DNA of 48,982 bases from Macrostomum lignano (lineage: Eukaryota), in assembly GCA_002269645.1 (NCBI GenBank), contig NIVC01003834.1, positions 1 through 48,982 of the forward strand, in the 5' to 3' direction. Shown here piece by piece: positions 2,275 through 48,982 of the stretch. Position 1 is the first letter of the stretch; every line of letters begins with the position of its first letter. The notes under the pieces were generated by a model. The model was given only the letters and a program-made list of their open reading frames with translations, had not been told where the DNA came from and did no database searches. Made by a program: the position numbers and the translations under genes.

Positions 2275-2530
2275 TTATTGTAACAGTTGGACTGTCTATG
2301 ACCTCGATATATTGTACCAGTTGGACTGTCTATGGCATCGATATTGTTACCAGTTGGACTGTCCATGAAATTGATATTGTACCAGTTGGACTGTCAACGA
2401 CATTGATATTGTACAAGTTAGAATGCCTATGACATTGATATTGTACTAGTTTGACTATCTGTGACATTGATATTGTAAGTTGGACGGTCTGTGGCATCGA
2501 TATTGTACCAGGTAGACTGTCTATGGCTGG
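2275..2530. repeat. Minisatellite, ~31-bp unit (~8 degenerate copies), containing the GTCTATG(G/A) motif
   Basis: Repeating TTGATATTGTACCAGTTGGACTGTCTATG(G/A)CA. Confidence 0.9.
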
Positions 2531-2989
2531 TTTGATGTACCATGCAGGTTTATGGTACCAATCCTGTTTATTGCCAGCAAACTTTTAAGAATCCACGCCA
2601 AGGATCTTTGCTATTGTGAAAACTGTATCGTTAATTTTACCATCTGATCTTATATTCAATATATCTTTATTTAACCTTCATATCGTTTGTAATGCTACAG
2701 TGATAAGTGCAATACTACTTCTAGTAGTACAATTTGATTCATAGAAGCAAATTCTGCAATCAAGCCAGTCAGGCGAGTCTACCGTAATCACATCTGCGGA
2801 TTGACTGCGTGCGCATGCTTTTATAAATCACGCGTGAAGGTATAATGCCAAAATATTATTAGAGGAAGCCTTGTCAATATGCAATACATGTGTAAATAAG
2901 TATTCTAAATATAGTACTCGCTGCGCTAAAACAAGGCTTTGACCGCATCCATTCAAACATAAAGAGCCAATCAAATCGTACAAACTCAC

Positions 2990-3063
2990 CAACAGCTTTC
3001 TAAGCGGGATCTGCTCCTGCACCTCCAGCTCATTGTAGAAATGTTCAAAGTTTATTAGCTTCA
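2990..3063 (-). CDS. Probable upstream exon of the LRR gene
   Basis: ctgcag| acceptor and |gtgagt donor; 74 nt encoding (V)KLINFEHFYNELEVQEQIPLRKLL. Ends in phase 0, matching the phase-0 start of the 2192 exon (AKLPTWF..). Confidence 0.5.
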
Positions 3064-4703
3064 CTGCAGACATTACAATTGCATTGTTGCAACTTTTTTT
3101 CAAATAAAATTTGCTTGATCAGAAATTTAACCACACAAGTGAGTGAGAATATTTGGCTTTAAACCTCATAATTTTTTTCACTCGTTTAGAAGGACAAAAA
3201 ACGGTTCAAGATGAACTATTTCGGCTGAGTTCTCACAAAAAGACTATTTTTAGCTTAGCTTGTAATTTGGTATAATAAAAAAAATATATATACGAGCGTA
3301 TTTACCTACTTTAAGCTAGTAGCATATTATTATTGCTACACATTTTACTCATTTTGTACATGAGTATTGAAATTTGTTTTATAAAGTTATACCAAATTAC
3401 AAAATTTTGAATAATTTGGTTAAATTTTTAGACAATAAAAATAGAAATTAGTGTGCATTAGTAGTATTTATTCATGCAGTGCTTTATTTGACAATCTTAT
3501 AAAGCATCGGCTTATCTGTTTTTATTGAATACATTGCAGTTAAATTTTAATCCAATTCGTACCTACAACCAAAAGCTACAAGCAATTTTTAGTTAAAATG
3601 ATTCAATAGTAAGTTGCAAAAATTCGTTTTTTTGTCGCTGTCACTAACCAGTCAAAACTGTTTGATGATAAAAAAACAATAAGAAATATTAAAATTTAAA
3701 ACTTGCTTATACTATAGCATCTAATTTAATTACTCTCGTAGTCTCGTTGTATGCATTCTGTTCTTTGAAATGTTAATAAGTATATACTATATAAGCTGCA
3801 GCTAAATAGCTAATGAGCACAGAAACCATAGGAAAAGATACAAGTTTTGAAGCGCAATAAATTATGAGCCACAACCTTCAGTGTTAAAAAACCGAGGGGA
3901 TAGTTTCAATATCCAAGTAAAAGTTCGACAGCCAGATAATCCACTTATTTGTCTGATAATATCGAATACAAATGCGGAGTATCTCTAAAAAACAGTAACA
4001 TGAAAAAGCAAACGAAATTTAATATAGATTTTTCTTGAAGCTGAAATGGTGGGAGGACGCCGTGAGAAAAACTGCCATGCAATTGATAAAGATTAAAAAC
4101 CATTGTGGATTTTAGGAAATAAGGGTGCATTTTTTTATTTTAAATTTTTTCTTGTAAATAGAAATTTCTTTGCTTCACTTGAATGGAGCTAGTAAAAATT
4201 GTTTTAATATACTACAGTCCATCCAATCCGTCTAATTGCATATTAATGAAACGAAAGAAATGTGGAAATTTTCAATACGTATTTTATCATGTTAGTTAAG
4301 TTATTTCGAAAATTTAAAGTTCTAAAAATTAAAATTTATAGTTTTTCAACAATTACTTCGAGCTACATTGCGTCTTCTTCTCAATTCAGAATAACGTTAA
4401 GTTGAATACATGCATTTTACATGACGTAAAATAGAATATACTTTCTTTGACTCGGGGTCCTGTAACAAACTCATCTAAACTGATATACTGTCAAAAGTTC
4501 AAACCTAGAACATACATGTATATGCTGCATTTTGCATGATATACTGCAGTGCATCTATACTTTTAGCCACGTACGTATGTGATGCATACTATCAGAACTC
4601 TCCGATTCTATTTTGATCGGTATCAACTTTCAGTTTATAGCTTATTACTACATGTACATGAAATTGCTTGCGAACCAAAAAATGGCGGATTTTTATTGTG
4701 CAA

Positions 4704-4872
4704 TACCAGGGGCCGTCGCCATGGATTTTATGGTGGGGGGACAAAGCCAAGAGTTCAACATGTACATGGTGGGGTCACAAGGTGGGGGTGGGGGGCAAAG
4801 CATTGGCATGCCCCCCAGAGGTTTTACTGGGAGGGGGACATGCCCCCCCTGTCCCCCCTGGTGTAATACTGG
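4704..4872. repeat. GC-rich short dispersed repeat / MITE-like insert in AT-rich DNA
   Basis: CCAGGGGCCGTCGCC...GGGGGACATGCCCCCCCTGTCCCCCCTGG, with G/C-run hairpins typical of small non-autonomous DNA elements. A similar-style element lies at ~20400-20510. Confidence 0.35.
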
Positions 4873-5599
4873 AGTAGAATGTATAATAGATGTGTACAGA
4901 TATCTTGAAACTTTGATTGTATCCCAAAAAAGGAATTAAGACTTCCTGTGAAGCGCATATGGGTTTGAAAAAATCTGTGGGCATATTTTTATACATGTAA
5001 CCTATGAAAATCGAAAAATGAACATGTAGCATTTAACAAAGCATCTGATTAGTATACTTTTATTTGGCCTCATTAGACCTTACATGCATTACGATATCGA
5101 AAAAATTGTATATTGAATACATGTAAAATCAAGAGTTTATATGTACCCCCCCAGCTTACACGTACTTTATCGATTCGGTGTTGCTTTCGCTTTTTTAATC
5201 ATTTTTTGTTGCAGTGAGCAGTGAGTATGTACGTGCATATAGAGATCATGGTACATTGTATGAAAAACAAAGAAGAGTCATAATTATTAATCAATGATCG
5301 AGTTTACCTTAAAATTGAAATATTTTTAAGTTGAATTCATGCAAATATACAAAATATGAGCCAAGCGATTCAAAGCAAAACTGGTCAGATACTGTACAAT
5401 AATGCACGTCACAAGGTTTTCATTTGCATGCGTACAAGCTAGGCGCTTTTCTCTACCAACATGCTTCTGCAGCTTACATATCATTTCAGTTGGCACAGAT
5501 AAAAGGGCTGCCTGGGTTAGAAAAGTAAGTCTCGATCGCGTGGCCTGAACAAGAGCAGCAGTCGCACAGTAACCAGCCTGTTTTCTAAAAAAGCTAGCC

Positions 5600-6666: not shown

Positions 6667-9269
6667 TCACCCATCACCAAGGTGGTCTTCCAGCACGGAA
6701 GCGATCCTATCGTAGAAGACCACTCGGCCCGGAAAGGCTTCGCTGAGGTTGAAGCGGCGCATTCGTTCAGAAGCCGCGAACTCGTAGCCCAAGTGTAGAA
6801 ATCTGTGCACTCCCAGACTGGCTTCACGGCCGGCCTCCGGGCTGATGTTAACTTCGTCCAGTTGCCAACGCTTCGCAGCCAACTGTCGGCAGCCCAGCCG
6901 TCGCCAGTGGTCAATCTCGACCTCCTCCGGCGTGCCGGTCACTGTTTCTTCTGCCTCGCGGCTCACTGTCCTTAGCGATGATAGTTTTGTCACTGCATTT
7001 GAAACTAAAATGACCTTAAATATTACATGCACAGCGGGCCGCACAGAAAGCTTCAAAACTAGTCTGATCTTAGACCTGCTTACACTCGTGGTTGCAGAGC
7101 CCCTTCCAATTTCGATTCGGATTCATCCAGGCCGAGAACAGGACGTATGACAGCAGCAGCACGGGTGGCTTTCTACCAGCCAGGGAGTACTCGGTGTACT
7201 TCCTGGTGAGTAGCTGCGGCCCGGTGCTGTGCACTATGGAGGCTTCGCCGCTCCGCTCGGGAAGCGCGCGGACCATCAGCCGGAAAAACGGGTGTCGCGG
7301 CGGAGCTGCCATGACGGAATTCATGACCAGGAAGGCGCGGCCCCACACAATCCGAGTCTGCTCCGGCCGCTCCTGGTCGAGAAGGGCCGCGGACATCTGC
7401 CAGGCCTTGTCTAGGAGAGGTGTCAGCGGTTGCAGGCACTGAACATCCATGTCCAGGTAGACACCTGTGCAGTATAGGGTTGACTACTTTCTTCATTGAA
7501 TCCGATATGGTCTTCTAAAGTCAATCATGTCTAGCTAATATAAAAAGAGGATTAAAATAAGGAGCCGTAGAGAGCGTTCAGATTTACAATAAAATCCCCG
7601 AGGTCCACTGATTTTCGGCGTTTCCAGATACAATTTCAATCAGCGTAGCCAATTTCACACCCTTTCTGCACTGCACTTAATGGTGTACTTAATAGCATAC
7701 CCCCGAAGAGATACAGCGCTGCATATCGGACCGCATCGGAGCGCTGCAGGTCGCTGCCGTAGCCCCTGTACACTGGCAGCAAGTTCGGGAAATTGTCTGC
7801 CAGCAGGCGCTCTGCGTCCGAGTTGCGCCAGAGCACGTAGGTGAAGTCCGGGTTAGCCGACAGACAGCTGTTGATGAAGGGCCGGTAGTTCTCATAGACC
7901 AGCTCGCTGGTGAACACCTGGTGCAATAGGCGACGGAACGGAGCTGCACCGCCCGGTTGAGACTGGCGTTGCTGAAGCTGCCAGTGAAGAAGGCTGACAA
8001 TCAGCGGGCAGGCGATCTGAAAGCTCAGGTTCAGCAATCGGCTAAGATGGTCAATAATGAAGAGTGTTTTTTAAGAGTGCGCTGTGCTCAGGAATTAGCT
8101 TGTGACATCTCTGTAACTGTTACAGCATTTATTATTTTTTTTAAAGGCTGGGGAGTTGATGTCCCGCGATTTGCTGGAGTAAAAGTTCTGTCCTCAACTA
8201 TATGAAACTGTAAGGCTCTACAGAGGGTCATCGGGCAACTTTTTTCCTTTTTATGGTTCCAGACGTCTGCTTTAACTGTCCTGAAGTTGTTCTGAACTAA
8301 TGTTGCCAAACTAAGATCTATGGCATTCTGGTGGATCGGGAAAGGCGATATAATCCACTAAGCGTCTCTCGACTAGGGGGGGGGGGGGTGGCGTGTGACT
8401 GTTGTTGAATGCTTGCTGTTCGATTCACTTCTATTCCCTCACGGCACAGAATGTATACATTCTTGAAGATGACAAAGTCAGGGCAGCTGAACAGCCTGTG
8501 TTCAAACTGCATTCAATTTCGGCAAACTGGCTTTCATTTTCGGCATCAGCTATGGCCGCACATCCAAACCGCATTTGAATTCGAACAAACCGAAAACCAA
8601 TTTCGGTAAACTGCATTCAATTTCGGCAACTTGAGTTTCTATTTAGACAAATTGATATTCAAATTCGGCAAACTGCATTCAATTTCGGCATCGTATTTTC
8701 AATTTCGGCAGCCAGCGCCTCGTGCCACAGACTGTCTATGGAAATAGACGCATCTAAACCCAAAACTGATATTCAATTTCTATATTCAATATTCAATAGA
8801 CAGTCTGTGGCACGAGGCGCTGCCGCCGAAATTGAATGTAGAGATGACGCACTCCGCGCACGAGTGTCTATGGTCGTTGCTGCACGCTTCTATGGTAAAA
8901 ACAAAAGCGCAATTGTTTGACAATGCAGTTTGCCGAAATTGGTTCTCGGTTTGTCGAATTCGAATGCAGTTTGGATGTGCGGCCATAGTTGATGCCGAAA
9001 ATGAAAGCCAGTTTGCTGAAATTGAACGCAGTTTTATCGAAATAGAACGCAAAAAGGTGTAAATGCACTGCCGATACAAAAAAACGAAAGTCCTTCCAGT
9101 GAATTTCTAAGAAAACCATGACTACACGGGTCAACTGTCACCTGCGTTGAGTTGTGCCAGTGCCCGAAGCCCTTCTGTCAACTATTTAACAATAAACACT
9201 CACCAGAATCGTTGCAAGAGTTAAACGTTTAGATGGATACTGCAGGGCTCTGTAGAAGCCTGCAGCCAT
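6667..9269 (-). CDS. GT32-family DxD glycosyltransferase (SUR1/CSH1/OCH1-like), paralogue 1, apparently intact, 362 aa type II membrane protein
   Basis: Exons 9269-9204, 8016-7701, 7464-7084 and 6992-6667 (1089 nt), all GT-AG and phase-consistent. N-terminal signal anchor (..SKRLTLATILIACPLIVSLLHW). Motifs LLHQ, SCLSANPDFTYVLW, RSDAVRY, GGVYLDMD (DxD split across an intron), STGP and C-terminal VHRFLHLGY. Confidence 0.88.
8503..9035. mobile_element. Foldback/palindromic non-autonomous element in intron 1 of GT32 paralogue 1
   Basis: Long inverted arms. CATTCAATTTCGGCAAACTGGCTTTCATTTTCGGCATCAGCTATGGCCGCACATCCAAAC.. (~8511-8617) is the reverse complement of ~8921-9028. Inner arms CGCCTCGTGCCACAGACTGTCTAT / ATAGACAGTCTGTGGCACGAGGCG; centre ~8770. 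Confidence 0.85.
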
Positions 9270-10278: not shown

Positions 10279-10939
10279 CTAGGTTTTGTGTATAGGAGCG
10301 ATAATGCAGCGCACCAGTAGACTGAAAAGTCCTGCCCCGACCCTCTCTGGGGCCCTCATTATTTAATAGTGTAAAACTAGACTAGACTACAGACGTTCCC
10401 TATGCCTACAGAACAATGGAAATCAGAGTGACCAAAAATTATAGACGCAGGCAGAAAGGCGACTTAAAGGTTCCTCTCTCAGCCAGTGGCATGGATAATT
10501 ACGAGCGTAGATATTTGAAGCGAATATTTTGAAATTATTTCTAATCAAGATATCCGTGGGCATGAATTTGAGGAGAATAAACATAGATGACAGTTTTATC
10601 CATGCATGTAGCTCGTAATTGCCATTTCTTTATACATAAGGACGTTCAAGGCCTACAAGACGTTTAAGAAATTTCATTTTCGCTCTGAAGGTGCTGAAGG
10701 TGGAAGCTGAGTTACTGAGTTACACTTCAGTTAAGTCAGAAACCTATCTTATCTATTAACGATCTTTAATATATGATCGTATACCCCATCAAAACCAAGC
10801 TGAGAAGGCTGTATCGTCAAAAATTGCAAAAGCAATTATTCTTTTACGCTTGTAAATTTAACTCAGCAACAATAAAACGTGTATACCATAGCGTGCGAAG
10901 CCACGAATGCTAGAACATGACTGTTCTTGGCACTATGTT

Positions 10940-11352
10940 TAGACCATAGACATCGGCCACCTTAAACCATAGACATCGGTCGTCTTAGACCATAGAAATC
11001 GGCCATCTTAGACCATAGACATCAGTCGTCTTAGACCATAGACATCGGCCCTCTTAGACCATAGACATCGGCCCTCTTAGACCATAAAAATTGGCCCTCT
11101 TTGACATTAGATATAGGCCGTCTTAGACCATAGACATCGGCCGTCTTAAACTAAAAACATCGGCCGTCTTGGACCATAGACATCAGTCGTCTTAGACTAT
11201 AGACATCGGCCCACTTAGACCATAGACATCGGTCGTCTTAGACCATAGACATCTGTCGTCTTAGACCATAGACATCGGTCGTCTTAGACCATAGACATCG
11301 GCCGCCTTAGACCATAGACATCGGGCGTCTTAGATCATAGACATCGGCCGTC
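10940..11352. repeat. Minisatellite, 23-bp unit GACCATAGACATCGGCCGTCTTA (~18 copies)
   Basis: Directly visible tandem array; paralogous array at 37610-37835. Confidence 0.95.
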
Positions 11353-12338: not shown

Positions 12339-13635
12339 GTTTCATTTATGCGCCGTGTCTTTTCACTTTCACTTATTTTAGCTCGCACTTCTAACCTAAG
12401 CTCACCTCGCTTTTGGCGTTCTTGTACTTTGCTAATAATTTTATGAGCCCTATTCTTGCAAATTTCTAAACCCTATATGCGATTAGCTACAGATTTTGCT
12501 GTAAAAATTAAAGCAAAAACATTGACACAAATCGATTAAAAGGTATTGAAATAATCGTAAGAAAAAATAAACACATTATGCGCTATTTATTCGATTATTA
12601 CACGAGTAAGTACAAACTAAATAGATTAGAGGTATGGAATGTCATTTTTGCTCTTACAGGGCTTTAACAAACGTTGGGGGAACATGTAGCTAAACTAATC
12701 GTGCATAACTCCGTTAATTATTTATGAAAAAAATAAATCACAGGACAGCACTTTGAAACGAGAACAAACTGATTTGCAAAAATATCAATTCTAATGTATC
12801 TAACAGTCTCTGAAACGCCATTTGTACGCTCGTAGTATGTGTAAAACATATCTATATGGGAATTGTGATTAATAGGAAATCTGGATAAGAAATTGCACTC
12901 GTAACTGAAGTTTTCATTTCCGCCAGATGCTTCACCACGAATAAGTTGACGAAGTATGCAAAATGCAGTTGCAACTTCGTTCAGTCAATACATTGACAGA
13001 GCGAGCAAACAGCCTCAGGATAAAAAAATGCGCAAAATTCAGGCAAGGTGCGGTAGTGCTCTCATTCACCGAACGATGCTAAATAAATAATATAATTAAT
13101 TCACAGTAAAATCTATTCCTGCTTGATTTTGCGGGCTAGACTGGAGGAATCTGCGATCTGAATCTGAAGATTCCTCTGGAGGAATCTCCAGAGGAATCTG
13201 GAGGAAAATATGCGCGAGCTAGTCTGAACATTCTTGCACGATGGAAAGAAGATTATGCTTGTAGTCTATGGCTGTTATGCTAAATATAGAAACATGGCGC
13301 ATTACATTCTTGCACGATTGACATTCCTGCATGGAGTGCACATGTAAATTCAAGGTGCTTTTACCATAGACACTTGCATTTCTGCACGCATATGGCGACT
13401 TCCAAAGCATTCTTACACGCTGGATCAAATAAGAATGCTTAAGAAACGGCCCATTCTCTGCCCGATATCGGGTTGGGCCATAGACGAAGACGAAACGATT
13501 GTATTTAAAACGTTAAAAGTGCAACATTAAAAAGAGTACAACAGTAACGATTTAATATAGTCTTGTGGTGCAACCCACGCCGTCTTTACAGTACATAAGG
13601 TAGTCAATGCCCAAGTGGCGTTCAGAGGTACTCAC

Positions 13636-14022
13636 TTATAGGAAAAATAGAACACGGGATCCATTTTTCTCTAGCACTGCAGTCGGCAGAACTCCATTAA
13701 AGTCCCTTTGTCCGCAGTCAACAGCAGATACTTTTAGGTCGCCACGCTCAACGCTAAAACCAGGCGATTGAAGTGGGACGTCGCTCGTGACTCGTTTAAC
13801 GATTGGACCAGGCGGTGAAGAATCCATTGTCAGAGCATTGGACAGTTGACGCTTCTTCCCTGGCGAGATCCGCTTTGTGTACCTCTGAACCGACTCTGGC
13901 CTCTTGTGACCGGTAACACATTGAATGTCGCCAACAGAAATGCCCTTGTTTGCTAGTGTCGTGACAACTGTAGCACGGAGACAATGATTGGTGTAGTTCT
14001 GTGATAGATTCGCTCTTGTAGA
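13636..14022 (-). mobile_element. Crypton-like tyrosine recombinase, C-terminal catalytic fragment (5' truncated)
   Basis: ISTRANLSQNYTNHCLRATVVTTLANKGISVGDIQCVTGHKRPESVQRY contains HxxR, (G)H and Y catalytic residues in the spacing typical of Crypton/DUF3504-type YRs. The ORF-track N-terminus (14023-14121) is just duplicated flank, as it matches 39020-39110. The insert ~13110-14022 is absent from the paralogous unit. Confidence 0.8.
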
Positions 14023-14386
14023 AATCCAAAGCGCATGTAGAGATGCATTGAGCTGATGAATAGTATATGTGTATGCTAAGCCATCCGGTCGAAAATGGAT
14101 CAAGGTGCAATGACAAAACAATAGAAGTGCAAAATCTGTTTACGTTCGACAAGCAGTATTTGACACACATATCGCACAGGAAAAATGTTCTGAACACTGG
14201 CAGTGTTGCTCCTGTTCTGCAGTACATGCACGTACACACTAAATTTATGGATTGCAACACGAGAAACGAGATATTCCAACGCGTTTCATTGAGTTTGCAC
14301 TGTGCACTTCTTCTTTTTGTTATAAAATGGCATCACTAGAAGCTTAGGCACTTGACAGTCACCCAATTATTGTCAAATTTACTTCT

Positions 14387-17112
14387 TCATTTGAAAGTTC
14401 GAACCCGGGGCCAGAAGCGGGCAGTGATGTTAAACGGTTTTTTCCGCTCCTTGGCGAATGAGCCATAGCCAAGATGAAGGAATCTGTGAACGCAGATTGT
14501 GGAATTGTCCGAGTCATCGTAGCGCCAGTTCTTCGACTCAAGCATGATGCAGCCGCGCTCTTTCCAGCTGCGCCGCGAGTCCGGCTTCGATTTGGCTGCA
14601 GCTGGAAGGCAGGGCACAAAATTGAATTATTAATTAGAATTGGATTAGAACTATGCAATGATAACGCCGGAAAGAGCGACTACTGTTTTTGTTAGATCCT
14701 ACTTCACCCTCTCCAGCCCTCTCGCAGATTGCATTGTTGAAGCCACCTTGTATTGGTACAGTGAAATCTGCTCAAATCATGATTGCGTTTCATTGACGCT
14801 ATGGACCAAATTAATGCTGCTGTCCCAGCCTTGCTACCATAGACAAAAGCTCCGTTACTTTGTAAAAATATACCTTTTAACAATTTTTTGGACATAAGTG
14901 AAGTTAATTTTGTCATTAGTCAGCCCAGCTCTAGAAAAGTGAGTTTGATTTAGTCAGCAGTCGGGGCTTACCATAGACTTTAGTTAAGAAATGAAATCGA
15001 TTTAATCAAGTTCCTCTAAATCCGTCTTTCGTAACTTTCATTAAGTCAAAGCGAATTTTATTTAGTCGTTATAGCTTTGAGAAGATACAAGTAGTGAAAC
15101 AAGAACGCAAACGAACACCAGACACAAGACGCTTCATTTTTCAATTAACGATGTCTTCCATGGCAATGCAACGGGGTATGTACCTAAGGCTCTCACGATG
15201 CCAGGTTTCGCAGTGAGGCTGTGTCACAGCTGCCATACTGGCCTCCAGCTCACGCTCTAGAATGCGGGCGCGGTGTTCTTGCAGAGTGACGCGTCCACTT
15301 TGTTCGTATTTAACGATAACATTTCTGGCAGACTGACGGGGGATGTTTAGCTGTCTCGCTAGTTGCTGCCAATCGGCATTGCCAATAAAAGCGTCGATGA
15401 GTCTTCGCCGGTCCTGCTCAGAGATAGTGACTCTGTGAATGCCTGCAGCTGCCGCCATGATGACTAAATAAAATTCACTTTGACTAAAATCAAGTCATGG
15501 AAGGGTTTAAATACGTGGCCCTTGACTAAATCGATTTCATTTCTTTACTATAGTCTATGGTAAACCCCGAGTGCTGACTAAATCAAACTCACTTTTCTAA
15601 GACTGAGCTGGCTAATGACTAAATTGACTTCACTTGTGTCCAAAAAATTGTTAAAAGGTATATTTGGGATTAAATTCAATGCATGTAGCCCAATTGTCAT
15701 TGACTTTTCTTAGCTCAAGTGTCCCTTTTGGGGTATCAATGAATGAAATTTCGTCTCGAATTTTCGTAGTCTATGGTAAAACAAGTTCCAACCAAGTATG
15801 CTTTTTTATTTTAAAAGAAATTATACTTTTATAGGATTATTATGATTTAGTTTTCTTTTACGCTTTCGTACTTTTATAATTTCGTAACAGTAACGCAACA
15901 ATTTTCGGCTTTTTACTTTAGTTCATTCAATCAGACGACGTTTTACTTTTTCAAAGCTATTACCTACCAACTCCAGTTAGATTAAACGTGCAATTCTGGA
16001 AGGTCCCGTTGAAGTTCACGATGATTGCAGCCGGCTCTGATTGCCGTTCTCCATACTTGGTTTCAATAGCCCTTGTCTAGCAAAGGGAGCGTCGCTCGTC
16101 CACGTAGTCCGAAATAGTAAATTAGGTGGAATATTACCTTTTGAGGGCAGGGAAGAATGGCCTGACGCACTGTACGTTCATATCCAGGTAAATTCCTGCA
16201 AATAGTGGAGCAGAGTGGCGAAACGTAACGAGGGGACCACCGACTCCTATTGACAGACTTTGTTGTCACGTTTTAGCTGATTCTAAAATAAGCTTGTGCT
16301 ATGTGTCTGTTTTGCATGCATTTAATTTTACGCTCATATGTACATTTTTGCGTTTATTTTGCCTTTCATGACTCGCTTGACTGGCTGAAAACTTACTTGA
16401 TTATTTTTGTTGTTGTTGTTGTGGCTGTTGTAGAAACTGTTGTCGCTGTTGTTTTTGTTGTTGTTGTTATCCATTTACACATGAAGCATTGTAAGTTGCG
16501 ACTGTCAAAAAGCCACAGGGCCATGATGCTATTTAACAAAAACGTCTGATGTCACTCCTGGCAGCCGCTTGAGATTGCAAGGCGCTTATCAAAACCTACA
16601 GGGATTCGCTAGCGAATAGAGCAAAGTGAATATTGCATTTACCGCCAGAGCTGCTAGTTAAGCAGAGCAGTCCGTGGTTAGTACCGTAGTCGAATAGTCA
16701 GGTAATGAGAGAGTAGTCCGTCGAGCTGAAGTACAGATGCCCCTGCTGATAGAAAAATTGGTTGTCACCCCCATAGTGGGAGCACTTTACTCGTTCAAGT
16801 TGCATGGCTTGAATGTTTCTATTTTTAGCTCGTCTAATTTCCCACTTTCTTGTGTGAAATACTTAAATTTTCTTTCAACAAAATGTGACCGAAGTTGCAT
16901 CTCTTTTTAGCATGATTCAGCTTCTAATGCTTTCCTGAAAAGGAACTCAAAGCTCCGGGTGAACAACAAGTCCTCAAAGCCGCTCACCTCCAAAGTGGTG
17001 CAGAACAATGTACCGAATAGAGTCGGCCGCTCCAGCACGTCAGAGTATTTCTTGTACTTGGCGAGAAACTCCGGATAGGCGGAGCTGATCAGCGCCTCCG
17101 CGTCGCTGTCCC
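14387..17112 (-). pseudogene. GT32 paralogue 2, pseudogene
   Basis: Last exon 14601-14387 is intact (..ICVHRFLHLGY..RVRTFK*). The middle exon is only ~16195-16143, with DxD mutated (GIYLDMN). The exon-A remnant 17112-16988 has a 1-bp deletion relative to paralogue 4 (ERPTLF vs ERADSIRY), and its 5' part is replaced by a YR retrotransposon. Confidence 0.85.
14871..15660 (-). mobile_element. Internally deleted Tc1/IS630-like DNA transposon with ~140-bp TIRs and TA target-site duplication
   Basis: TA|TACCTTTTAACAATTTTTTGGAC... ...GTCCAAAAAATTGTTAAAAGGTA|TA. Internal ORF 15141-15458 joins an HTH (ISEQDRRRLIDAF..WQQLARQLNIPRQSARNVIVKY) to a transposase-like C-terminal tail (CETWHRESLRYIPRC); no DDE domain. 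Confidence 0.85.
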
Positions 17113-25473: not shown

Positions 25474-25479
25474 TGCACT

Positions 25480-26897
25480 TATAGTATACAATCCAAGCGT
25501 TTCAGACCATCTGCAAGCATAGGTGCAAACCAAGTTTCAGAAACCATTTTCCTGTAGTTTTCCGAGCAGGCTGGTAGGGCTGCACGTGTGACCGTCCATT
25601 CGATCGACGCCGCCCATGCAGCGGTTGTAGGTCAAAGCTGAGCGGCACTTCTGCACTGCAGCCGCTGCTCCACCTCGGGTGATTCGTCAGACTGGAACTT
25701 TTGATGCTGCCTCCTTTTTGTTCAGCAAATACAACGTTTTTAGACCGCTTTCGTTTCTTTCAACAATCTTTGCGGCCAGTACGGCAACCCTTGCGCACGA
25801 AGCTGACATCATTGGGCGGCACATTTAACTGCCTGAGATCAATCGGAACGCACGTCAGCTTGTATGGTGCAAGTCAGATCAGTATCTCGATCCAGAAGGT
25901 ACTTAGCCAATCGATAGGTACCAAACCACTTGTCGACAAAAATGTGGTAGCCTTGGTCCAACAGATCTTGGCAAAGCTCGACAACAATTTTTTCGCTGAA
26001 TGACAGGTCTTCGCTGTGGATCTACATCAAATCCACGATTCTCCTCCGGAGTAGCATGAACTCGAAAGTTGAAAACAAGTAGCCTGTTTCAGACTCGCAA
26101 GCACAGTACAGCTTGATGCCGTACCTGGTGCGCTTAGTTGGAATGTATTGCTTGAAGCCTAGTCGTCCTTTATAAAGAACTAACGACTCGTCAATACTTA
26201 TTTCTTCCTCAGGTCTGTAGGTGTTCATGCAGGTGTCACGCAAAATTTTCAAAAATGAACGAATCTTGTACAACGGATCACGTCCAGATGTGGGATCCTC
26301 ACGGCAGTCACAAAAGCGAAGAAAGCCGAGCAATTGCTTGAAGCGGTCTCTTGAGAGTGCCTCAGGTGCTTGAAAATATGATGTCGAGTGGTAGCTGTCA
26401 GTAATCCAGTAGTCATTCATTTCAGTCTTCTTGTTGCTGCACATGTACATGCCAACCAACTTCTTGACTTCATTTGCGTTGCATTCGTTCCACTGTGACA
26501 AACTCGAAGGCAGGTCATCAGCATCCAATGAATTAATTGCTGCCCAGGCTCTACGGTTAGTCCACTTAGCTAGGTCTTCAAACAACGAATCAGACAGGAA
26601 TAAACCTAGGAAGAATGAAGTTGTGTTCTCAACATCGGCAGGCACTATTTTTCCAGGATTCAGGCCAGGTGTTCCGAAAAACTCGATGTCTGTCACCGAT
26701 GCGTCGTTCCCAACGATAGCAGGCCGCCATGACAACACATCAGCTACGTCCTCATCAGCATTGTCCAGAACATCTGACTCACTAGAAGAATCATCTGATA
26801 AAAGGTACTCCTCGTCGTCCGATGTCATGAGTTCAGGCACTTTGTCCGCTTGGGCCATTTCAAGCTCTTTGAGAACTGGTTTTAGTTTTTGACACAA
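25480..26897 (-). mobile_element. piggyBac-like transposase pseudogene
   Basis: SRDRFKQLLGFLRF, DPLYKIR, ISIDESLVLYKGRLGFKQYIPTKRTRYGIKLY (ORF 26022-26897). Continues in shifted frames as QGYHIFVDKWF (~25950) and YNRCMGGVDRMD (~25600-25635), i.e. all three catalytic-Asp regions, with frameshifts and deletions. Confidence 0.9.
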
Positions 26898-27057
26898 ACC
26901 AGACTGAGACGGATGAAGTATAGCTCGTAGGGAACAAAAACTTAAGGAGTCTAAGAACCACTGTAGTATAAAGCGCGACTGTATAAGCTGTTAAAAAAAG
27001 CTAGACGAGTGAGGAGACAGATCAGCTTCTCTGTTTGAACTGACTGGAGTTACGAAA

Positions 27058-27858
27058 AAGCCATGGAGGAAAGAATAGAATGGAGTGCTAATCTGAGCCA
27101 GTTATTTTTATCTCGCTCGATTTTCGCTTTTAACATCCCTTTCCCCCCGTTCCTTCCTATTGGCTGAAAGCATATTTTGATGCGAGCTCATATTGCTTTT
27201 GTCAGCCTAACTGAGAATAAAGCCACCCAAAATGAGAATCCTGCCTACGCTGACTGCGAAGGGCCTGGCTGCGTGCAGCCTTAGTCTATGGGCCATAGAC
27301 AATAAAGGACAAGCAAAGTGATAAAAAGCCATCCAATGTGAGAATCGATTGGTCTATGTGTCGTATTTTTTTATTTTTATACCTTCTGAGCCATATGACT
27401 AGCCAATAGCTTGAACGGAATAACGGAAACAGGAACACACTTTGCTTGTCCTTTATAGTCTATGGCTCATAGACTAGGCTGGACGCAGCTAAGCCCTTCG
27501 TATTCAGCGTAGGCAGGATTCTCACATTGGATGGCTTTTTATCACTTTGCTTATCCATTATAGTCTATGGCCCATAGACTAAGGCTGCACGCAGCCAGGC
27601 CCTTCGCAGTCAGCGTAGGCAGAATTCTCACTTTGGATGGCTTTATTCTCAGTTAGGCTGACAAAACCTATACTATGCTGGGACAGACCTTTCAGAGGGG
27701 AACGAAAACGAAAACGAGACGAAAAATACTTTGTCTATGGCAGTCACGAGCCAATAGGAAAGAACGGGGGGGGGGGAAGGGATGTTAAAAGTTAAGATCG
27801 AGCGAGATAAAAATAACTGGCTCAGATTAGCACTCCATTCTATTCTTTCCTCCATGGA
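27058..27858. mobile_element. ~800-bp modular foldback element with GTCTATGG-N-CCATAGAC dyads
   Basis: Outer arms CCATGGAGGAAAGAATAGAATGGAGTGCTAATCTGAGCCAGTTATTTTTATCTCGCTCGAT (~27061) and its reverse complement (~27795-27856). Inner arms 27195-27330 versus 27510-27666. Dyads at 27284-27300, 27458-27474 and 27563-27579. Confidence 0.9.
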
Positions 27859-28647
27859 AAAAGCACGCTTCTTATACTATTCGTGTTGCCCATCCCTTTT
27901 GTACAGGGACCAGTGTGCTTTCAGTCTAGAAACAGGCTACTAGATGTACGTTTTGTCTCTTTTTCTACCCTAGTCGGCTGAATCTGTAGATAAGCATTGC
28001 TTACCAAGCCGATCGGAACGGAGAGAAAAAATACCTATGGCTCAGTCAGACGCCAAATGGTCTATGGTAAGCTCTGTTTACTATCAGACTAAAACGGAGA
28101 TGATAAAAATTTAGGCCTAGTCCTGAAGAGTTTTTATGTTTATTGCTGATCGCTTGTTTAACTCGAAATAAATCGTTTTATTGTCCCACGTCTATGGGGC
28201 TTTTTTGTTCGGAATTAATAAAACAATATGTAAAACTCCGACAGGTGGAAAAGTGAAAAACAGGGAATTTTCTCAGGTAGAAACGATGCAGTTACTTTCA
28301 TTCACTAAATAATGTCAAGTAAATAATATAGATGCGTTGAGTTGAAGCGTAGTACATCCATGTGTTAAGCCATTCGGTCAATTCGGGACGGGTGCCATGA
28401 AAAAAACAGTAAAAAGCGAAATATTGATTTAAAAAAGCAAACAGTATTACCGTTTACAAGGAATATTTGACACACTTGTTGCGCGGGAAAAATGTTCTGA
28501 ACACTGGCATTATTGTTAACTAAATTTATGGATTGTAATAATAAGAGCTACGAGTACTCGTTCGACATTCCAAAGCTTTTCTTTGAATTCGCATTGTGCA
28601 CTTTGGCACTTGCATCACCTTGCATCACCTCAGCTTTGGCCCTTAAG

Positions 28648-31445: not shown

Positions 31446-31449
31446 CAGT

Positions 31450-35700: not shown

Positions 35701-37609
35701 TTTGATACTGCCCGGCCTTCAATTCAGACCGGCTCAACTACCTCGGGCCCAACCCGAGAACTCAGTCACAAGTTCCCGCCTCGGCCCCGGCCGCCTCCGC
35801 GTCCTGCCCTGCCCGGTTTAGCTGAATCGAAATGCAGAATCGATATGGAAATTAAAAGAGGATCATAACAGTGGAAATTATGCTGAGAAAGTAGCGGATA
35901 AAAAGCAGAAATAATAGTAATCATGTTTTACTGGAAAGCTTTATGCTTAAAACTGCCGACATAAATTTGCAGTAGAAATTCGAAATGCTCTTATAACGGT
36001 TATGGTCTAATTTCGGACTGAAATTTTGATTGTTGTCAGAGCGGAAACAATTTTTTTACTGTGCAACTTGCAAATTTAATGACAGGCACAAAGGCAGGTT
36101 TATGAGTTTCGGTGGGACAAGACATGGCGGTGAATGAAAAAAGTGGAGGCCTTGCTGTGTACACTTTTGGTTCATGCGTCCATTGCATGCTGTTTATTGT
36201 AGATCATTGCAGACTGCCAGAAGTCCGATGGAAACATCCGTTGAAGGTCCCGACGGTCGTTTAGACGGTCGGGGTGGTGCAGGAAGTAGGTTGAATGCAA
36301 GAAGGAGTCGTAGGTTGCTCATTGACAAGATTTCATAATAAATATTTGACCGAAATTTGTTTCGGATCTCAAATTCCGATGATGTCAGAATGTGCTCGTT
36401 GAATGTCCTGACGATGGTCGACGGTGGCCACGGGGCATTGTTGTAGCGCACTAAAAGTGTTCTGGGTTACCTCACCAATGGCTGAAATGAGGTTTGGGAT
36501 CATTTTGTGCACCTTACTGCCTGATGTCAAGACCTAGCCACTGAATTCGACGGTTTGCCTTCAAAAACAGGGGGACCTCCTTGAGAATCGCTGAATATCT
36601 CAACGATCTCGATGTCGGAGAGAGCCGGCGATGGCTTCATCAGATTCCTCGATAAATTTTAGCCCGTACAGTGAATTTTCAGATGAATCCATCGTCGGGT
36701 TCAAGAGTTATGGCGTGGATAACTTTTTGGGTATTTGAAATACCCCCCATCGGCATCCGTGCAGTGGAAAAATAGCTTCGGCATCCGACTGTTAAACCTA
36801 GCCGTAATCCAAACCCTAACCCTAGCATATCGGCCTAGCCGCCTATCAGCATATCGGCCATTCCCCAATGAGTCGTCACTTATGGCGCACTTGAATTGGT
36901 CTTTTGGTAACTCTAAATTGACAATTTACAACTTGTTGCAACTTGAAACTGAGTTAATTGCATTTGAGTTGGTTGTGTTGACTACTTGACTAGGAAAAAC
37001 CTATAGAATAGGATCGATAACTTCTCAATGTAGCACACTAGTAGACTGAGATGTCCTGCTCTGACCCTGTCTCGGGCCCTCATAAATTAATTGTGTAAAA
37101 CTGGACTAGACGCTCTCTACACCCTACAGAACCATAGAACTCAGAATGAGCACGGATTGTAGGGTGGACAATTCGTGTTCACCCTACACTCATAGAGATA
37201 GGGCAGGCAGAAAGGCAGCTGAAAGGTTCCTCTCTCAGCCAATGGTACAAGCGAATGTCGCGAAACTTTTTCTATAAAAAAGATATCCGTGGGCAGGAAG
37301 TGCAACAGATCGAGCTATTTGTAAAGTTTCCTAGCTGAGGTACGGTCCAATCTGTAAAGGAAAAGCACGATACATTATAGGGTTGAATTTAGGAAAGTAA
37401 AAAATGTTAGTTTTATCAAGTCCCGTCTTGTTGTATAGTGCATGTAATTCATTTTTTTACATATCAAACCGTTTAGGGCCTAGCTCGTACAAGGCGTTAA
37501 AGACGCTCGAAATTTCTTTTTTCGCTCTGAAGGCTTCTGAAACGTTGTGAGCTGAGTCACTGAGTTAAGCTTCAAGTTGAATCAGTGTCCGACCCCCGGC
37601 CGTCTTCTA

Positions 37610-37835
37610 CCATAGACATCGGTCGTCTTAGACCATAGACATCGGCCTTCTTAGACCATAGACATCGGCCGTCTTAGACCATAGACATCGGCCGTCTTAG
37701 ACCATAGACATCGTCCGTCTTTGACCATAAACATCGGCCCTCTTAGACTACATACATCGGCGGTCTTAGACCATAGACATCGGCCCTCTTAGACTACATA
37801 CATCGGCCGTCTTAGACCATACATACCGGCCGTCA
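37610..37835. repeat. Minisatellite, 23-bp unit (~9-10 copies), paralogue of 10940-11352
   Basis: (GACCATAGACATCGGCCGTCTTA)n, directly visible, with the same flanks as the first array. Confidence 0.95.
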
Positions 37836-42300: not shown

Positions 42301-42715
42301 TGATCAGCGCCTCCGCGTCGCTGTCCCGCCACAGATAATATGTCCAGTCCGGGTTCAGCGCCATGCAGCTGTTAATGTAAGGCAGGTAGTTTTCGTAGAC
42401 CATCTCGGATGCAAACGCCTGGTGCAGAATTCGCGGTATGCGAGCAGACGAATTGAACGCTGGTGCAGCTTTCTTTGTGGGCGCGACTGCAGCTCTTGTG
42501 GTTGTTCGCGTACTCTGAGTTGTAGGTGTAGTTCTGGCAGTTGGCGTCGCTGGCTTTAGCGAAGTTGGAAACGAATTCAAAGCCTGCTGTGCATGAGGCT
42601 TGTTTGGCTCAGGGTTCAGCGGCTTTGGCACAACAGAAGGCCATTGACTCGAAATGACTGACCTGGGAATTTCCTCACCATCAGACCAGTACCAGCCGGC
42701 AGTTTTCCACGTTGC
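39387..42715 (-). CDS. GT32-family DxD glycosyltransferase (SUR1/CSH1/OCH1-like), paralogue 4; open reading frame, N-terminal exon not identified
   Basis: Exons ~42715?-42202, 41585-41217 and 39601-39387, GT-AG with phase-1 junctions. Motifs IPRILHQ, NSCMALNPDWTYYLW, RADSIRY, GG|IYLDMD, TTGPAILT and ICVHRFLHLGY; Thr/Pro-rich stem. Intron positions match paralogue 1. The 5' acceptor at 42715 is tentative. Confidence 0.82.
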
Positions 42716-43189
42716 CTGGGAGATTGCGGAAGTCGAGGTGAGAAATGCGTGCGGACTGATGAGCCGTATGGCTTTGCCAAGGCCAACTCAAAAAAATTTG
42801 TGGCAATGCAAACTTATTGATGACTCATTGCTAGTGGGCCTATCCAGAAACAGAAGGTCTGTTGGCATCATAGCAAATAGAACTTGTAGAAATTTCAAGA
42901 AAAAATTACTTATAGAGTAAAATTGGTGTGCAACTGGCTGTCTCGCTTCTATAAAAAATTAACGCCAGAATTATTTGCTCCGGACGCAGTAGGGACAATT
43001 GCTGCTGGGAAGTTACACGGAAATGAAATCGCCTTCAACACTGCCTAATCTCTCAAAGCAGCCAGTTTCTCCCTACTAGCTAAGTGCTGCTTAGCTATAT
43101 CCGGGGACTTCTCAGTCGACTCATTCGTGCTGCACGCAGCTCAAAGCAACTGTCTTCAACAGGATGTGCAGAATCGCAATACGAGCCAG

Positions 43190-43752
43190 CTAGCAGCAGC
43201 TATCATAGACTAAGGTATTCAGAATTGCACCAGCTAGCAGCGGCTACCATAGACTAAGGTATTCAGAATTGCACCAGCTAGCAGCAGCTACCATAGACTA
43301 AGGTATGCAGAATTGCACCAGCTAGCAGCGGCTACCATAGACTAAGGTATGCAGAATTGCACCAGCTAGCAGCGGCTACCATAGACTAAGGTATGCAGAA
43401 TTGCACCAGCTAGCAGCGGCTACCATAGACTAAGGTATGCAGAATTGCACCAGCTAGCAGCGGCTACCATAGACTAAGGTATGCAGAATTGCACCAGCTA
43501 GCAGCGGCTACCATAGACTAAGGTATGCAGAATTGCACCAGCTAGCAGCGGCTACCATAGACTAAGGTATGCAGAATTGCACCAGCTAGCAGCGGCTACC
43601 ATAGACTAAGGTATGCAGAATTGCACCAGCTAGCAGCGGCTACCATAGACTAAGGTATGCAGAATTGCACCAGCTAGCAGTGGCTACCATAGACTAAGGT
43701 ATGCAGAATTGCACCAGCTAGCAGCGGCTACCATAGACTTAGACCATAGACT
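43190..43752. repeat. Minisatellite, 44-bp unit CCATAGACTAAGGTATGCAGAATTGCACCAGCTAGCAGCGGCTA (~12 near-identical copies)
   Basis: Directly visible; ends in CCATAGACTTAGACCATAGACTATAG. Confidence 0.97.
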
Positions 43753-45729: not shown

Positions 45730-46690
45730 ACTAACAACAACAACAACAACAACAACAAAATATGCTGTCAGGATGGCAAAAGTCAGCGTCACAGGGCGCG
45801 CTTCATGGCTTGGGCGCGAACAAAGGCCGCGCCACCGGCAGTGTCCGGGGCGCCGGCGTCAGCCAGCAGACAGTCGACGTAACGCCGAGTTTGCGCTTTA
45901 CCTCGCCGGTAGGGTGCCTGCAGCGTGAGCAGCAGCACCTCCTGCACCGGCTGTGGGTAGTAGGACTCGGCGCGGTGAGATGGCCTGCGAGCTAGAGTCG
46001 CCGACGGCGCAGTAGATCGCTTGGGCGTGGCAGGCCAGCGCGGCGATAGAGTACCGCGTGGTTGACTCGCTCGACGCCGATGTTGAAGGCGGCGCGCAGC
46101 AGGCCAGCGTGCGCCGCATCGACTTGCTGTTCGAGTGAGTCCGTCAGCGTCCAGGTCTCGGCGTTGTAGAGCAGGATGGTCTCGATTACCGCCTGGAACA
46201 GCGCCGCCCTCTGGCGGTCCGGTAGGGCCTCAGACTGTAGGACTGCCCTCACAGAACGAAAGGCAGCCCAGGCAAGCCCGCGGCGGCGTCGCAGGTCCTC
46301 GCGAGCGTCTGGAACCAGACCGCCGAGGTAGACGAACTGCTGACATTGCGGGAGCTCGGTCGCCTGCCCGTTAGCGCCTCGGCAGAATATTGCAGCCTCG
46401 ATGTCGTCCGGCACGCAGAGCACAACGGTCTTCTGCGTGTTGACCACCAGGCCGACGCTCGCCGCAACGGCAACTAGCCTGTCCAGCTGCCGTTGGGCGC
46501 CCTCGACGGTCGAGGACAGCAGGGCGAGGTCGTCGGCGTAGCCAAGCACGCTGAGCCGCTTCTCCGGTTGACGTCGACCCACGCGTCGCCGCAGCAGAAA
46601 GCCGTCGTCGTCGGTAGGAAGAGCAGTCCGCAGCACCCAGTCAAGCACCAGGACGAACAGGAACGGCGCCAGCGTATCTCCCTGAAGCAC
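45730..46690 (-). mobile_element. 5'-truncated RTE-like non-LTR retrotransposon with (TTG)n tail
   Basis: QGDTLAPFLFVLVLD, LGYADDLALLS, GLVVNTQKT, FVYLGG and LLYNAETWTL (ORF 45992-46690); (AAC)n at 45733-45757 on the + strand. Confidence 0.9.
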
Positions 46691-46980
46691 TCCACTAAAC
46701 TCTATCTATGGATACGAAGGAACCATGCACGACAATGCTTTCACTCGTGACATCTTGATCACCAACCGCTTAGTGCCGCTTAATGAACTCACTTGACAGC
46801 TGAATCACCAATGGCGTTGCTTTAACTTTTGTGCACCGTGTCAATTTGAGTTAGAGAGGGGTAGCCGTTACCGAGTATAAAATCATATCCTTGATGTCTA
46901 TTGTCGCTGTTAATAACTAGACTGTTGCTACTTCGGGTGTGTCATAAGTAATGTCACTGCATGCCTGTGTCAAAAGTATG

Positions 46981-47293
46981 GGCATTCCTTCGGTTTACGA
47001 TCATTTTTCCACCCACATTTCATGTATCTCTTCCATTTAAATGATCGTAAACCGAAGTGGATATATAGGATCATCTTTGGATTCTTGGAACTGTGAAATG
47101 GATCACTATAACCCCTTTACCTTCTTTTTTTCATTTGAACATGCAGCTAGTGTTATGATGGATAAATAAAAAGGATTGGAGTGCTTGTCTACTTTTTTTG
47201 CATTTTGATGAAATAAACAACAGTTTTGTATCTTCCCTATCTCTCCAATGGGGATCCTCACTAATTTCAATGATCGTAAACCGAAGGAATGCC
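46981..47293. mobile_element. MITE-like element with ~25-bp TIRs
   Basis: GGCATTCCTTCGGTTTACGATCATT (46982) versus AATGATCGTAAACCGAAGGAATGCC (~47269-47293), with an internal partial TIR copy at ~47040. Confidence 0.7.
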
Positions 47294-47471
47294 GAAGTAT
47301 GTAGGCATATGCACTTGTGGGTAGTTCAGTTGCAAAGTATACTTAGTAAAGCAATACCAGTACATTCGAGACGTGCATAGGATGTTTATGGCCCAGCCTA
47401 CCGCAAGAATTCGTTGAGCAGATTTAGCAAGTGCAACGCGAGAAAAATCGTCTATGCAATGGATAAATAAT

Positions 47472-47561
47472 CAGCGGTCCCAGTGCGTGACAACGATTGT
47501 CTGGCGAGCGCCGGTAGGCGCGAGCCATAGACAAATCGTTGTCACGTGCTGCGACCGCTGA
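47472..47561. repeat. Short imperfect inverted repeat (hairpin) carrying CCATAGAC
   Basis: CAGCGGTCCCAGTGCGTGACAACGATTGTCT ... AGACAAATCGTTGTCACGTGCTGCGACCGCTG. Confidence 0.7.
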
Positions 47562-47739
47562 TTCTTTGCATTGTTTTTCTATTTGACGATCCTACAGACA
47601 ATGCATTGTTTGTAGTAATGGATTGTTCTGCATTAAAAATGTGAATAATGATCGTCAAATTGCTAAACAATGAACACAAATCACAATGAATCTCGACAAG
47701 ACGCCTGCGCCAGGCAGATCCACAAGGTGTTCAGCAGCC

Positions 47740-48339
47740 GGGGCTTGGATGACATTCTAAACTGCCTGGTTGTTGAAGAAAATACCTGGCTTCACCTGGA
47801 GGGCAAGGGCAGCAAGGCAGACAATTGCTGCTGGCTGGGAGCTGGGGACTCCAAGGCGACAGTGACCAGGAAGTCGGGACAAGAATACCATGCTGCTGGT
47901 GGCCTTCACTCCAAACAAACGAGTCTCCATCTGCACAATTCCACTGAACACCAATGTCGAAGGTCAGTATTTTATCGACTTTGTCCGGCACACTGGAGAC
48001 CTCTGGCGCTCTCTCCGGTCAAACCCAATTCACCTGGACGAGGTGCTGTTGCAGATGGACACCACACGGCCGCACACCTGTAAGGCTGTTTCGGATTTTC
48101 TGGCTGCACGGCGAGTGAATCTGCTCTGGCAGAGTCCCTACAGCCCGGACTTCAACTTGTGCGACAGATTTCTGTTCAAATGGCTCAAGACTGACTTTTC
48201 CGAGAGGATTTTTGCAAACCATGAAAAGGTCAAACAGGCCGCGTTGCACTACTGGCTCCGGCAGCTGGAGGAAAACCACCTGCAGGCTGAGGTGGAGAAG
48301 CTGTATGAGCACTGGGGGGTGTTGCATAGAATTGATTAG
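47740..48339 (+). mobile_element. mariner-like DD34D transposase remnant
   Basis: LLQMDTTRPH..WQSPYSPDFNLCDRFLF has exactly 34 residues between the second and third Asp. The first-Asp region is degenerate (CLVVEENTWLH) and lies in another frame. Confidence 0.85.
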
Positions 48340-48982
48340 TCGCAAGTTACAAGCTACAAGCTTGACAAGTGAATAGTGAATGGTGACTTATGTTGCATAG
48401 AGACTTGACTAGTTACAAGTAGGCGACAAGCAAGTGAATAGTGACTAGTCGCGCTACAAGCAGTTTATTGTATAGAATCTAATATTGACTAGTGTCATAG
48501 TAAATTTAAGTGTGACAAGTTGAGTAGTGAACCACGAGCTGTTCAAGCTTGTAATCGGTTGAAAGCATATATCACATGCATTGAGCAAAAATGTTTTACG
48601 ATTCAGATTCAGAAGATTCCGATGCGGAGGATCCAATTAAGCGTCCCCGAACATTCAATCAAAAATTCAAGGAAATTCTTCCAGCAAGCAATTCTTTTGT
48701 CCTTAGTAACAATGGCGCTAAATTCTCCAAACAATACGCTTTTGTGATCTCGAACTAGAGATAAAAACAGTCGCTTGTTTTCGTTCGTTTATGGCATGCT
48801 TATCTAAAGAAATGTATAGTTGGACAACAAAGAAGACCTTAGCGGGGAGATAAAATCATGCAGTCAATTTGTACCTACATGGAATAAGCTCACCATAGAC
48901 TACAGTTGATTGCCCATCAACTTGTAACTTGTCAATTAAATCTACAAGCGTGCGTGAGCAACACAAATCAGGCGCACTTGTA

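Follow-up and report, generated by a model that had tools for sequence, protein, structure and literature searches.

An over-represented 8-mer in a transposon-rich window

Contig NIVC01003834.1 of Macrostomum lignano (assembly GCA_002269645.1) was analysed over all of its 48,982 nucleotides, and this whole stretch is referred to here as the window. It is rich in transposons. By its CryptonA-, DIRS-, piggyBac-, mariner- and LINE-type genes and its GT-AG introns it would be judged eukaryotic and probably animal. It holds a DIRS/Ngaro-like retroelement, piggyBac-like, mariner-like and Tc1/IS630-like elements, a CryptonA-like tyrosine recombinase gene, glycosyltransferase genes and several tandem arrays (Table 1). 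Scattered among these is the 8-mer CCATAGAC, referred to below as the motif. An earlier note on this DNA proposed that the motif is a cis-acting site that is recruited by different mobile families and nucleates tandem amplification. Our own, tentative reading is that it may be a short protein-recognition half-site carried by transposons.

It is clear that CCATAGAC is over-represented. There are 52 exact copies on the two strands of the window, whereas dinucleotide-preserving shuffles contain a mean of 0.99 +/- 1.0 and a maximum of 3. Outside the tandem arrays called with Tandem Repeats Finder (TRF) there are 19 copies, where a third-order Markov model predicts 0.83 (Poisson P ~1e-19). The earlier note had listed the same 19 copies, all of its coordinates are correct, and the excess it described persists over a Markov background within the window once the arrays are masked. 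With the same masking, CCATAGAC has the top z-score among 22,603 strand-collapsed 8-mers. It is about 20-fold over-represented in this transposon-rich DNA, and two other 8-mers, CTATGGTA and TATGGTAA, are likewise enriched about 12- to 14-fold. The enrichment belongs to the exact word, because variants with a single mismatch are barely enriched (31 against 23 expected, 1.3-fold only). Intact copies are in excess of decayed ones, and therefore a divergence of about 5% can be deduced; host repeats in the window differ by 5-30%. Literature searches with the 8-mer, 11- to 12-mers and 13-mer palindromes as strings returned primers only or no match. A by-eye comparison with known factor sites (RFX X-box, YY1, SMAD and CArG) also gave no fit.

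Could a single transposon or repeat family account for this excess? The 60 nucleotides on either side of every copy were compared with shuffled controls. Homology between flanks is limited to the expected paralogs, which are found at two places: 14866-15665, where the element has two arms, and 27.2-27.7 kb, where both arms and units match. This leaves about 14 independent dispersed contexts (P < 1e-13). The flanks are unrelated and therefore one family cannot account for the excess in the window. Positions beside the motif are little informative, except for R at -1 and W-A at +1/+2. A subfamily of copies has 12-13 nucleotides in common (GCTYACCATAGAC), and six copies show the extension GTCTATGGTAAR.

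The sites of the dispersed copies follow a pattern. None of the 19 lies within sequence bearing open reading frames (ORFs), which makes up about 38% of the window, and the motif is confined to non-coding, repeat-rich parts of DNA-transposon-type elements. The Tc1-like element has it in both arms, 106 bp inside, at 14971(+) and 15553(-). These arms are just 84-91% identical, yet the motif is kept in both. An element of 797 bp with terminal inverted repeats (TIRs), inserted in the 5' non-coding region of the piggyBac-like element, holds six copies including 27733(-); its interior consists of 106-bp units plus an inverted duplicate. In the degenerate repeat 3' of the recombinase ORF, the copies at 13364 and 13478 occupy homologous positions of the ~100-bp units. 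Upstream of the mariner-like ORF the motif lies in one arm of a hairpin, and the other arm reads GTCT--GG, which is the motif minus AT. Given copies in the piggyBac-like, Tc1-like and 797-bp TIR elements, in the flank of the CryptonA-like gene and in the mariner-like upstream hairpin, the claim that different mobile families carry the word is right. The possibility that the long-TIR element and the mariner-like copy form one family was considered and dropped, as there is no similarity between them.

Some copies are paired. Three head-to-head pairs, GTCTATGG-S-CCATAGAC with a 1-nt spacer and one of them with a mismatch, are found at the joints of the 106-bp units (27284/27293, 27458/27467 and 27563/27572). 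Two tail-to-tail pairs, which are degenerate and also have a 1-nt spacer, lie in the palindromic element at 8504-9034: CCACAGAC-T-GTCTATGG (8725-8741) and CAATAGAC-A-GTCTGTGG (8794-8810). This element is largely made of 21-bp sub-repeats, CAATTTCGGCAAACTGCATT, in both orientations (8503-9051). A glycosyltransferase gene follows about 0.4-0.9 kb downstream of it, and the 44-bp array precedes the paralog at 42787 by a similar distance. Elsewhere, a two-copy repeat with long G runs (646-846 and 9970-10171, 85% identical) has differing one-mismatch variants of the motif at the homologous position, CCATACAC at 819 and CCACAGAC at 10144. These are compatible with a decayed ancestral copy.

Table 1. 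Features of the window with their positions and, where assigned, strands
Feature	Position	Strand	Remarks
32-bp array	2243..2542 (TRF 2243-2525)	-	8.8 units
Palindromic element	8504..9034		Motif 8734(-), 8866(-); variant at 8888
Segmental duplication	10303-17704, 37027-42787, partly 28327-30639		7073-8070 listed alongside
23-bp array, copy A	10939..11352	+	18 units, 12 exact; adjoins CryptonA-like recombinase gene
Three degenerate ~100-bp units	13215..13510		3' of recombinase ORF; motif 13264(-), 13364(+), 13478(+)
CryptonA-like tyrosine recombinase gene, last exon	13639..14139	-	Pfam Phage_integrase
Lone motif copy	14837..14844	+	TA on 5' side
Tc1/IS630-like element	14866..15665		Inverted arms ~210 bp; helix-turn-helix ORF remnant 15144-15494, minus strand
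Lone motif copy	15769..15776	-	Context GTCTATGGTAAAAC
DIRS/Ngaro-like retroelement	20.5-24.75 kb (20535-24744)	-	Reverse transcriptase, RNase H-like and integrase-SAM-like matches; SAP-domain ORF
piggyBac-like transposase ORF remnants	25479..26990	-	Pfam DDE_Tnp_1_7, E = 2.7e-36
797-bp TIR element	27061..27857		Arms at least 88 bp, starting CCATGGAGG; direct repeat AAAAAG flanks
Two motif copies, 28060 and 28190	28060..28197	-	5' non-coding region of piggyBac-like element
LINE-type (long interspersed nuclear element) reverse-transcriptase fragments	35103-35462, 45995-46705		
23-bp array, copy C	37597..37834	+	10 units, 6 exact; paralog of array at 10939
44-bp array	43186..43752 (TRF 43186-43739)	+	12.6 units, 98% identity, motif in each unit
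Hairpin upstream of mariner-like DD34D ORF	47465..47567		Motif 47525(+) in one arm
mariner-like DDE_3 ORF	47.7-48.3 kb		DD34D spacing
Motif copy	48893..48900	+	Followed by TA and Tc1-like end CAGTTGATTG... (TA, then CAGTTG)

Tandem arrays and a CryptonA-like recombinase

Of the eight families of arrays in the window whose period is 12 bp or longer, four have the motif in their unit, and the 21-bp, 15-bp and 24-bp arrays are without it. The last of these is a perfect tandem duplication of GACCCAGCTAATGTAAATATCAAA in two copies (44204-44252). The earlier note described three unrelated minisatellite families whose units carry the motif or a one-mismatch variant. The exact motif is present in 12 of 18 and 6 of 10 units of the 23-bp arrays and in all units of the 44-bp array. 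In the 32-bp array the description holds for just four of the nine units, two having GTCTATGG in register exactly and two with one mismatch; the other five differ at two or three positions. The hexamer ATCGAT, contained in this 32-bp unit, is about 2-fold enriched in the window. The 106-bp units (27438-27644), with GTCTATGG-S-CCATAGAC junctions, make up a fourth array family, and the degenerate ~100-bp repeat at 13.2-13.5 kb a fifth.

Are the families unrelated? Two ordered blocks, CCATAGACTAAGG and GTAKGCAGAATT, are common to the 44-bp and 106-bp units, and the 44-bp unit is probably a deletion derivative of the 106-bp unit. The earlier note had correctly placed CCATAGACTAAGG both in the 44-bp array and at 27572, and TTAGACCATAGAC at the end of the 44-bp array, the terminus of which is CCATAGAC-TTAGA-CCATAGAC. 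The remaining pairs of units (23-bp, 32-bp and 44/106-bp) have just an 8- to 9-mer in common. Otherwise-unlike units do, then, contain the word. However, "three unrelated families" is an overstatement, with the 23-bp arrays paralogous to each other (see below), the 44-bp and 106-bp units related and the 32-bp array a weak case.

The idea that the motif nucleates tandem amplification is not supported. There is no sign of it in array ends, in unit conservation or in the breakpoints of inverted duplications. Both 23-bp arrays stop at one conserved border that is not the motif, between CGGCCGTC and ATAC, and the 44-bp array is the only one that ends on the motif. When the 28 units of both 23-bp arrays are taken together, conservation per position stays flat (79-100% in the motif, 68-100% elsewhere). 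The inverted duplication within 27061-27857 (27.2-27.7 kb) has its breakpoints away from the motif. The arrays may be ordinary internal or subterminal tandem duplications of transposon segments that carry the motif, rather than arrays seeded by it.

What if the motif is passive, with no function at all? Old short modules would have hitch-hiked in the non-coding DNA of transposons, and clustered copies would have given microhomology for slippage or unequal exchange. The lack of extra conservation of the motif in the 23-bp arrays is consistent with this, as is its loss or gain between paralogous segments. Many copies also lie within degenerate tandem or inverted repeats, and the GCTYACCATAGAC subfamily hints at the common descent of some of them. 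What the idea does not predict is about 14 contexts without detectable flank homology, intact copies that far exceed one-mismatch copies and an identical 21-mer that recurs in unrelated contexts in other organisms (described later). A passive motif is therefore doubtful.

The 23-bp arrays also raise the question of a recombinase. Copy A adjoins a gene whose last exon is 45% identical to a metagenome protein (P0006) that itself matches DUF3504 and Phage_integrase. The string YTNHCLRAT is common to this exon and to sea-urchin CryptonA proteins (Additional file 4, PMC3212892). Because of this relative and this string, the tyrosine recombinase of the window is classed, from its sequence, as CryptonA-like. 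The gene is part of a tandem segmental duplication. In its unit the recombinase gene is accompanied by the 23-bp array and by a glycosyltransferase gene, all collinear and with near-constant offsets. Therefore the 23-bp arrays are paralogous to each other, and how far the homology extends is uninformative on transposon ends. There are four glycosyltransferase paralogs of the DXD kind (Gly_transf_sug, GT32-type), with GT-AG introns of about 150-600 nt.

In this setting the motif could be the core site of a tyrosine recombinase of the Crypton/DIRS kind, with inverted TAGTCTA arms around a 7-bp overlap, TGGSCCA, and recombination between such sites would yield tandem and inverted arrangements. 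TATGG is the terminal direct repeat of most CryptonS families (Kojima and Jurka, 2011, PMC3212892), and GTCTATGG contains it. In Chlamydomonas, Crypton insertion and rearrangement have been observed at short target motifs (PMC9977147). The inverted pair with its short spacer resembles a recombinase site, CryptonA-like genes adjoin the 23-bp arrays and a DIRS-like element is present in the window. However, the CryptonS lead is weakened because the enzyme here groups with CryptonA, for which no terminal repeats have been reported, and because the "copies" of its gene belong to the segmental duplication. Their ends are unreadable, the homology stops at points that are free of the motif, and in the window the motif could not be matched to the end of a Crypton and is not demonstrably at the end of any element. 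Furthermore, a related Crypton contig (L018) is without the motif and the inverted-duplication breakpoints lie away from it. A recombinase core site is quite improbable.

A few other observations were made on these parts of the window. The DIRS/Ngaro-like element has 229-bp direct repeats at 20722 and 24516 that are 99% identical, and inside each is a perfect 15-bp triplet, AAAAGGCCAACCGAC. A (GTCA)94 microsatellite of 96% purity (31075-31451) adjoins a GC-rich block (31.8-36 kb) with LINE-type reverse-transcriptase fragments. Searches of the window with Rfam and for tRNA genes gave no matches, and protein searches returned hardly any.

The head-to-head palindrome in other genomes

The motif was also sought outside the window. 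The 23-bp unit has no match in the metagenome collection. The 21-nt head-to-head palindrome, TAGTCTATGGNCCATAGACTA, is present in 15 metagenome contigs from six datasets of the Joint Genome Institute (JGI), twice in prokaryote genomes (596 Gb) and not at all in viral contigs. About 0.5-1 match per collection would be expected by chance; this figure was estimated from the base composition and is approximate, as no size is given for the metagenome set. Two of the 15 contigs have the same sequence, one is clearly bacterial (L006) and one, with a sulfatase, is ambiguous (L010). The others have low coding density or split genes, and the contigs as a set are mostly eukaryote-like. These metagenome loci have 25-40 bp around the palindrome in common, with unrelated flanks beyond. 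The palindrome occurs in alternating hexamers, (CCATAG W CTATGG N)n, with up to 4.5 units in L009. Arrays of CCATAG/CTATGG with a 14-bp period were noted in three eukaryote-like contigs (L009:329-395, L001:1503-1537 and L011:1541-1575), several of them in short introns. Rfam searches of the metagenome loci gave sub-threshold hairpin matches only.

The palindrome of L004 is intronic. Once its intron of about 110 nt is taken out, the sequence matches axonemal dynein heavy chain 1 (DNAH1) over 279 residues without a break. An origin of the palindrome as a sequencing-adapter artefact was rejected because the exons before and after it are parts of one continuous DNAH1 gene. In L002 and L009, as in L004, the palindrome is inside an intron, away from its borders.

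The 21-mer with a central A was also seen in bacterial intergenic hairpins, at L006:1625-1645 (Bacteroidetes-like), L016:96-116 (a Bacteroidia metagenome-assembled genome, MAG) and L017:7642-7662 (a Planctomycetales MAG). L016 and L017 have 27 identical bases in common, which is above chance for two matches. These bacterial sites may be an unrelated bacterial palindromic repeat.

Could the motif be a splice signal? Carried by introner-like or exonising mobile modules, it would be read on both strands, with CCATAG/AC as the acceptor and CTATG/GTAAG as the donor. The six copies that reach GTCTATGGTAAR are a good donor match and their complements, (T)TTACCATAG, are acceptor-like. The palindromes in short introns, and the continuous DNAH1 match restored by removal of one, also fit. 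However, in L002, L004 and L009 the palindrome does not supply the splice sites, which is unlike introners, and no window copy is found at a recognisable exon border. In the Tc1-like element the acceptor would come before the donor, a layout that would mark out an exon and not remove the element. A role in splicing is thus very improbable.

A rather improbable idea, which the recurrence of the palindrome brings to mind, is that the CCATAG/CTATGG half-sites, here GTCTATGG-N-CCATAGAC, form a self-standing palindromic micro-module that has mobility of its own in animal genomes or is propagated there by an enzyme. It would be a eukaryotic counterpart of the bacterial repetitive extragenic palindromic (REP) sequences and REPINs, recognised by a trans-acting nuclease or recombinase, and would spread into introns and transposons and seed arrays. 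Like REPs and bacterial interspersed mosaic elements (BIMEs), the palindromes are short, form inverted pairs or small clusters and are dispersed in unrelated non-coding contexts. In contrast to them, these palindromes have a eukaryotic setting, and no HUH or RAYT-type gene was seen in association with them. This is a resemblance of looks, not membership.

The last link outside the window concerns piggyBac. A relative of the piggyBac-like element, found in another metagenome (L019), has about 61% nucleotide identity over the coding region. Its end is TTAA followed by CCCCTACGG, and a single copy of the motif lies 62 bp inside. This copy aligns with the one at 28060 in the window, with 8/8 positions kept and flanks about 66% identical (P ~0.04, from one pair and with the end of the window element not located). 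One copy of the motif has thus been retained across two diverged piggyBac relatives.

A possible protein-recognition site or element end

A sharply defined word, independent of family, found in several types of mobile element and in inverted pairs, makes a cis-acting protein-recognition site the most reasonable reading of CCATAGAC. In this respect the proposal of the earlier note survives, whereas the repeat-generating, array-nucleating role finds no support. The half-site would often be used as an inverted pair with a 1-bp spacer, and would be carried in the non-coding, repeat-rich and mostly subterminal parts of several unrelated DNA-transposon-type elements. Some protein, either of the transposase type or a host factor, would bind it, and transposons might keep it as an aid to their own expression or transposition. 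Judged from sequence comparison, this is a possibility that we put somewhat below an even chance.

Several observations weigh against it. The orientation of the motif relative to neighbouring genes is inconsistent, and the copy at 14837 is missing at the paralogous positions of the other two duplicated segments. The flat conservation of the 23-bp units is not what a bound site would suggest. The contigs that carry the palindrome have no general excess of the 8-mer, with one extra copy in 30 kb. One motif in five transposon types is unusual for a transposase site, and a host-factor site should occur at ordinary promoters too. Finally, the dinucleotide TA is found directly 5' of the motif in six of 17 independent contexts and 3' in six of 17 (TA frequency 0.054, P ~2e-4 per side). 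Such flanks would suit an element end or footprint no less than they suit a binding site.

The main rival of a recognition site is an element end. The motif would be the terminal or junction sequence of short non-autonomous units that are moved by a cut-and-paste transposase with TA as its target, of the Tc1/mariner/IS630 type. In that case the GTCTATGG-N-CCATAGAC palindromes would be abutted ends, extreme internal-deletion derivatives or excision footprints, and the arrays would be head-to-tail concatemers. Besides the enrichment of TA on both sides, this is suggested by the 106-bp units, which are bounded by inverted copies that abut with a 1-bp spacer, and by the 21-nt palindrome standing alone, TA-flanked, in unrelated introns and intergenic DNA of eukaryote-like contigs. 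Tc1/mariner-type elements also exist in the window.

However, many details do not fit an element end. Just one element (14866-15665) has clear long inverted arms, and there the motif lies 106 bp in from the tips. The intervals between neighbouring same-strand copies are without terminal inverted repeats, and such pairs were for this reason rejected as target-site duplications of miniature inverted-repeat transposable elements (MITEs). The 106-bp units abut with 1 bp and have no target-site duplication. A 173-bp unit has what looks like a 28-bp TIR, but the inverted duplication of the array explains it, and a search of the window found no autonomous element that terminates in the motif. Bases further out than TA do not vary either among the metagenome loci (CCA...TGG), and this is unexpected for a target site. 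An element end is thus unlikely, though it has to be taken seriously.

A separate palindrome, TACATGTA, has 12 copies window-wide against 1.3 expected (e.g., at 13344 and 14222). It resembles the TA-CA/TG-TA footprint of Tc1 excision.

How would a recognition half-site compare with known systems? Transposons are known to carry subterminal binding motifs. Examples include the AAACGG hexamers of Ac, the 12-bp repeats of En/Spm, the inverted repeat/direct repeat (IR/DR) sites of Sleeping Beauty, the internal repeats of piggyBac that are bound by its cysteine-rich domain and the IHF sites in many bacterial insertion sequence (IS) ends. Like these, CCATAGAC is short, exact and non-coding, lies near ends in inverted or tandem copies and is retained between the diverged piggyBac relatives. 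Unlike them, it occurs in at least five unrelated element types at a variable distance from their ends, and its binder is putative. Boxes common to unrelated satellites or transposons are known as well, including CENP-B-box-like motifs, the Jeffreys minisatellite core and the Su(Hw) site array in gypsy. Here too one short motif recurs in otherwise unrelated tandem-repeat units and mobile elements. However, the conservation of CCATAGAC does not exceed that of the other positions in the unit, and in this it differs from the minisatellite core and satellite boxes.

If CCATAGAC is just a family-specific feature of transposons, this is ordinary repeat biology. If it is a true binding site across transposon superfamilies, there would be a common host or transposon factor on which many elements depend or by which they are controlled, and the motif would offer a way to find it. 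That the identical 21-bp palindrome recurs at unrelated loci in other uncultured eukaryotes is suggestive of a small propagating module that is usually overlooked by repeat annotation.

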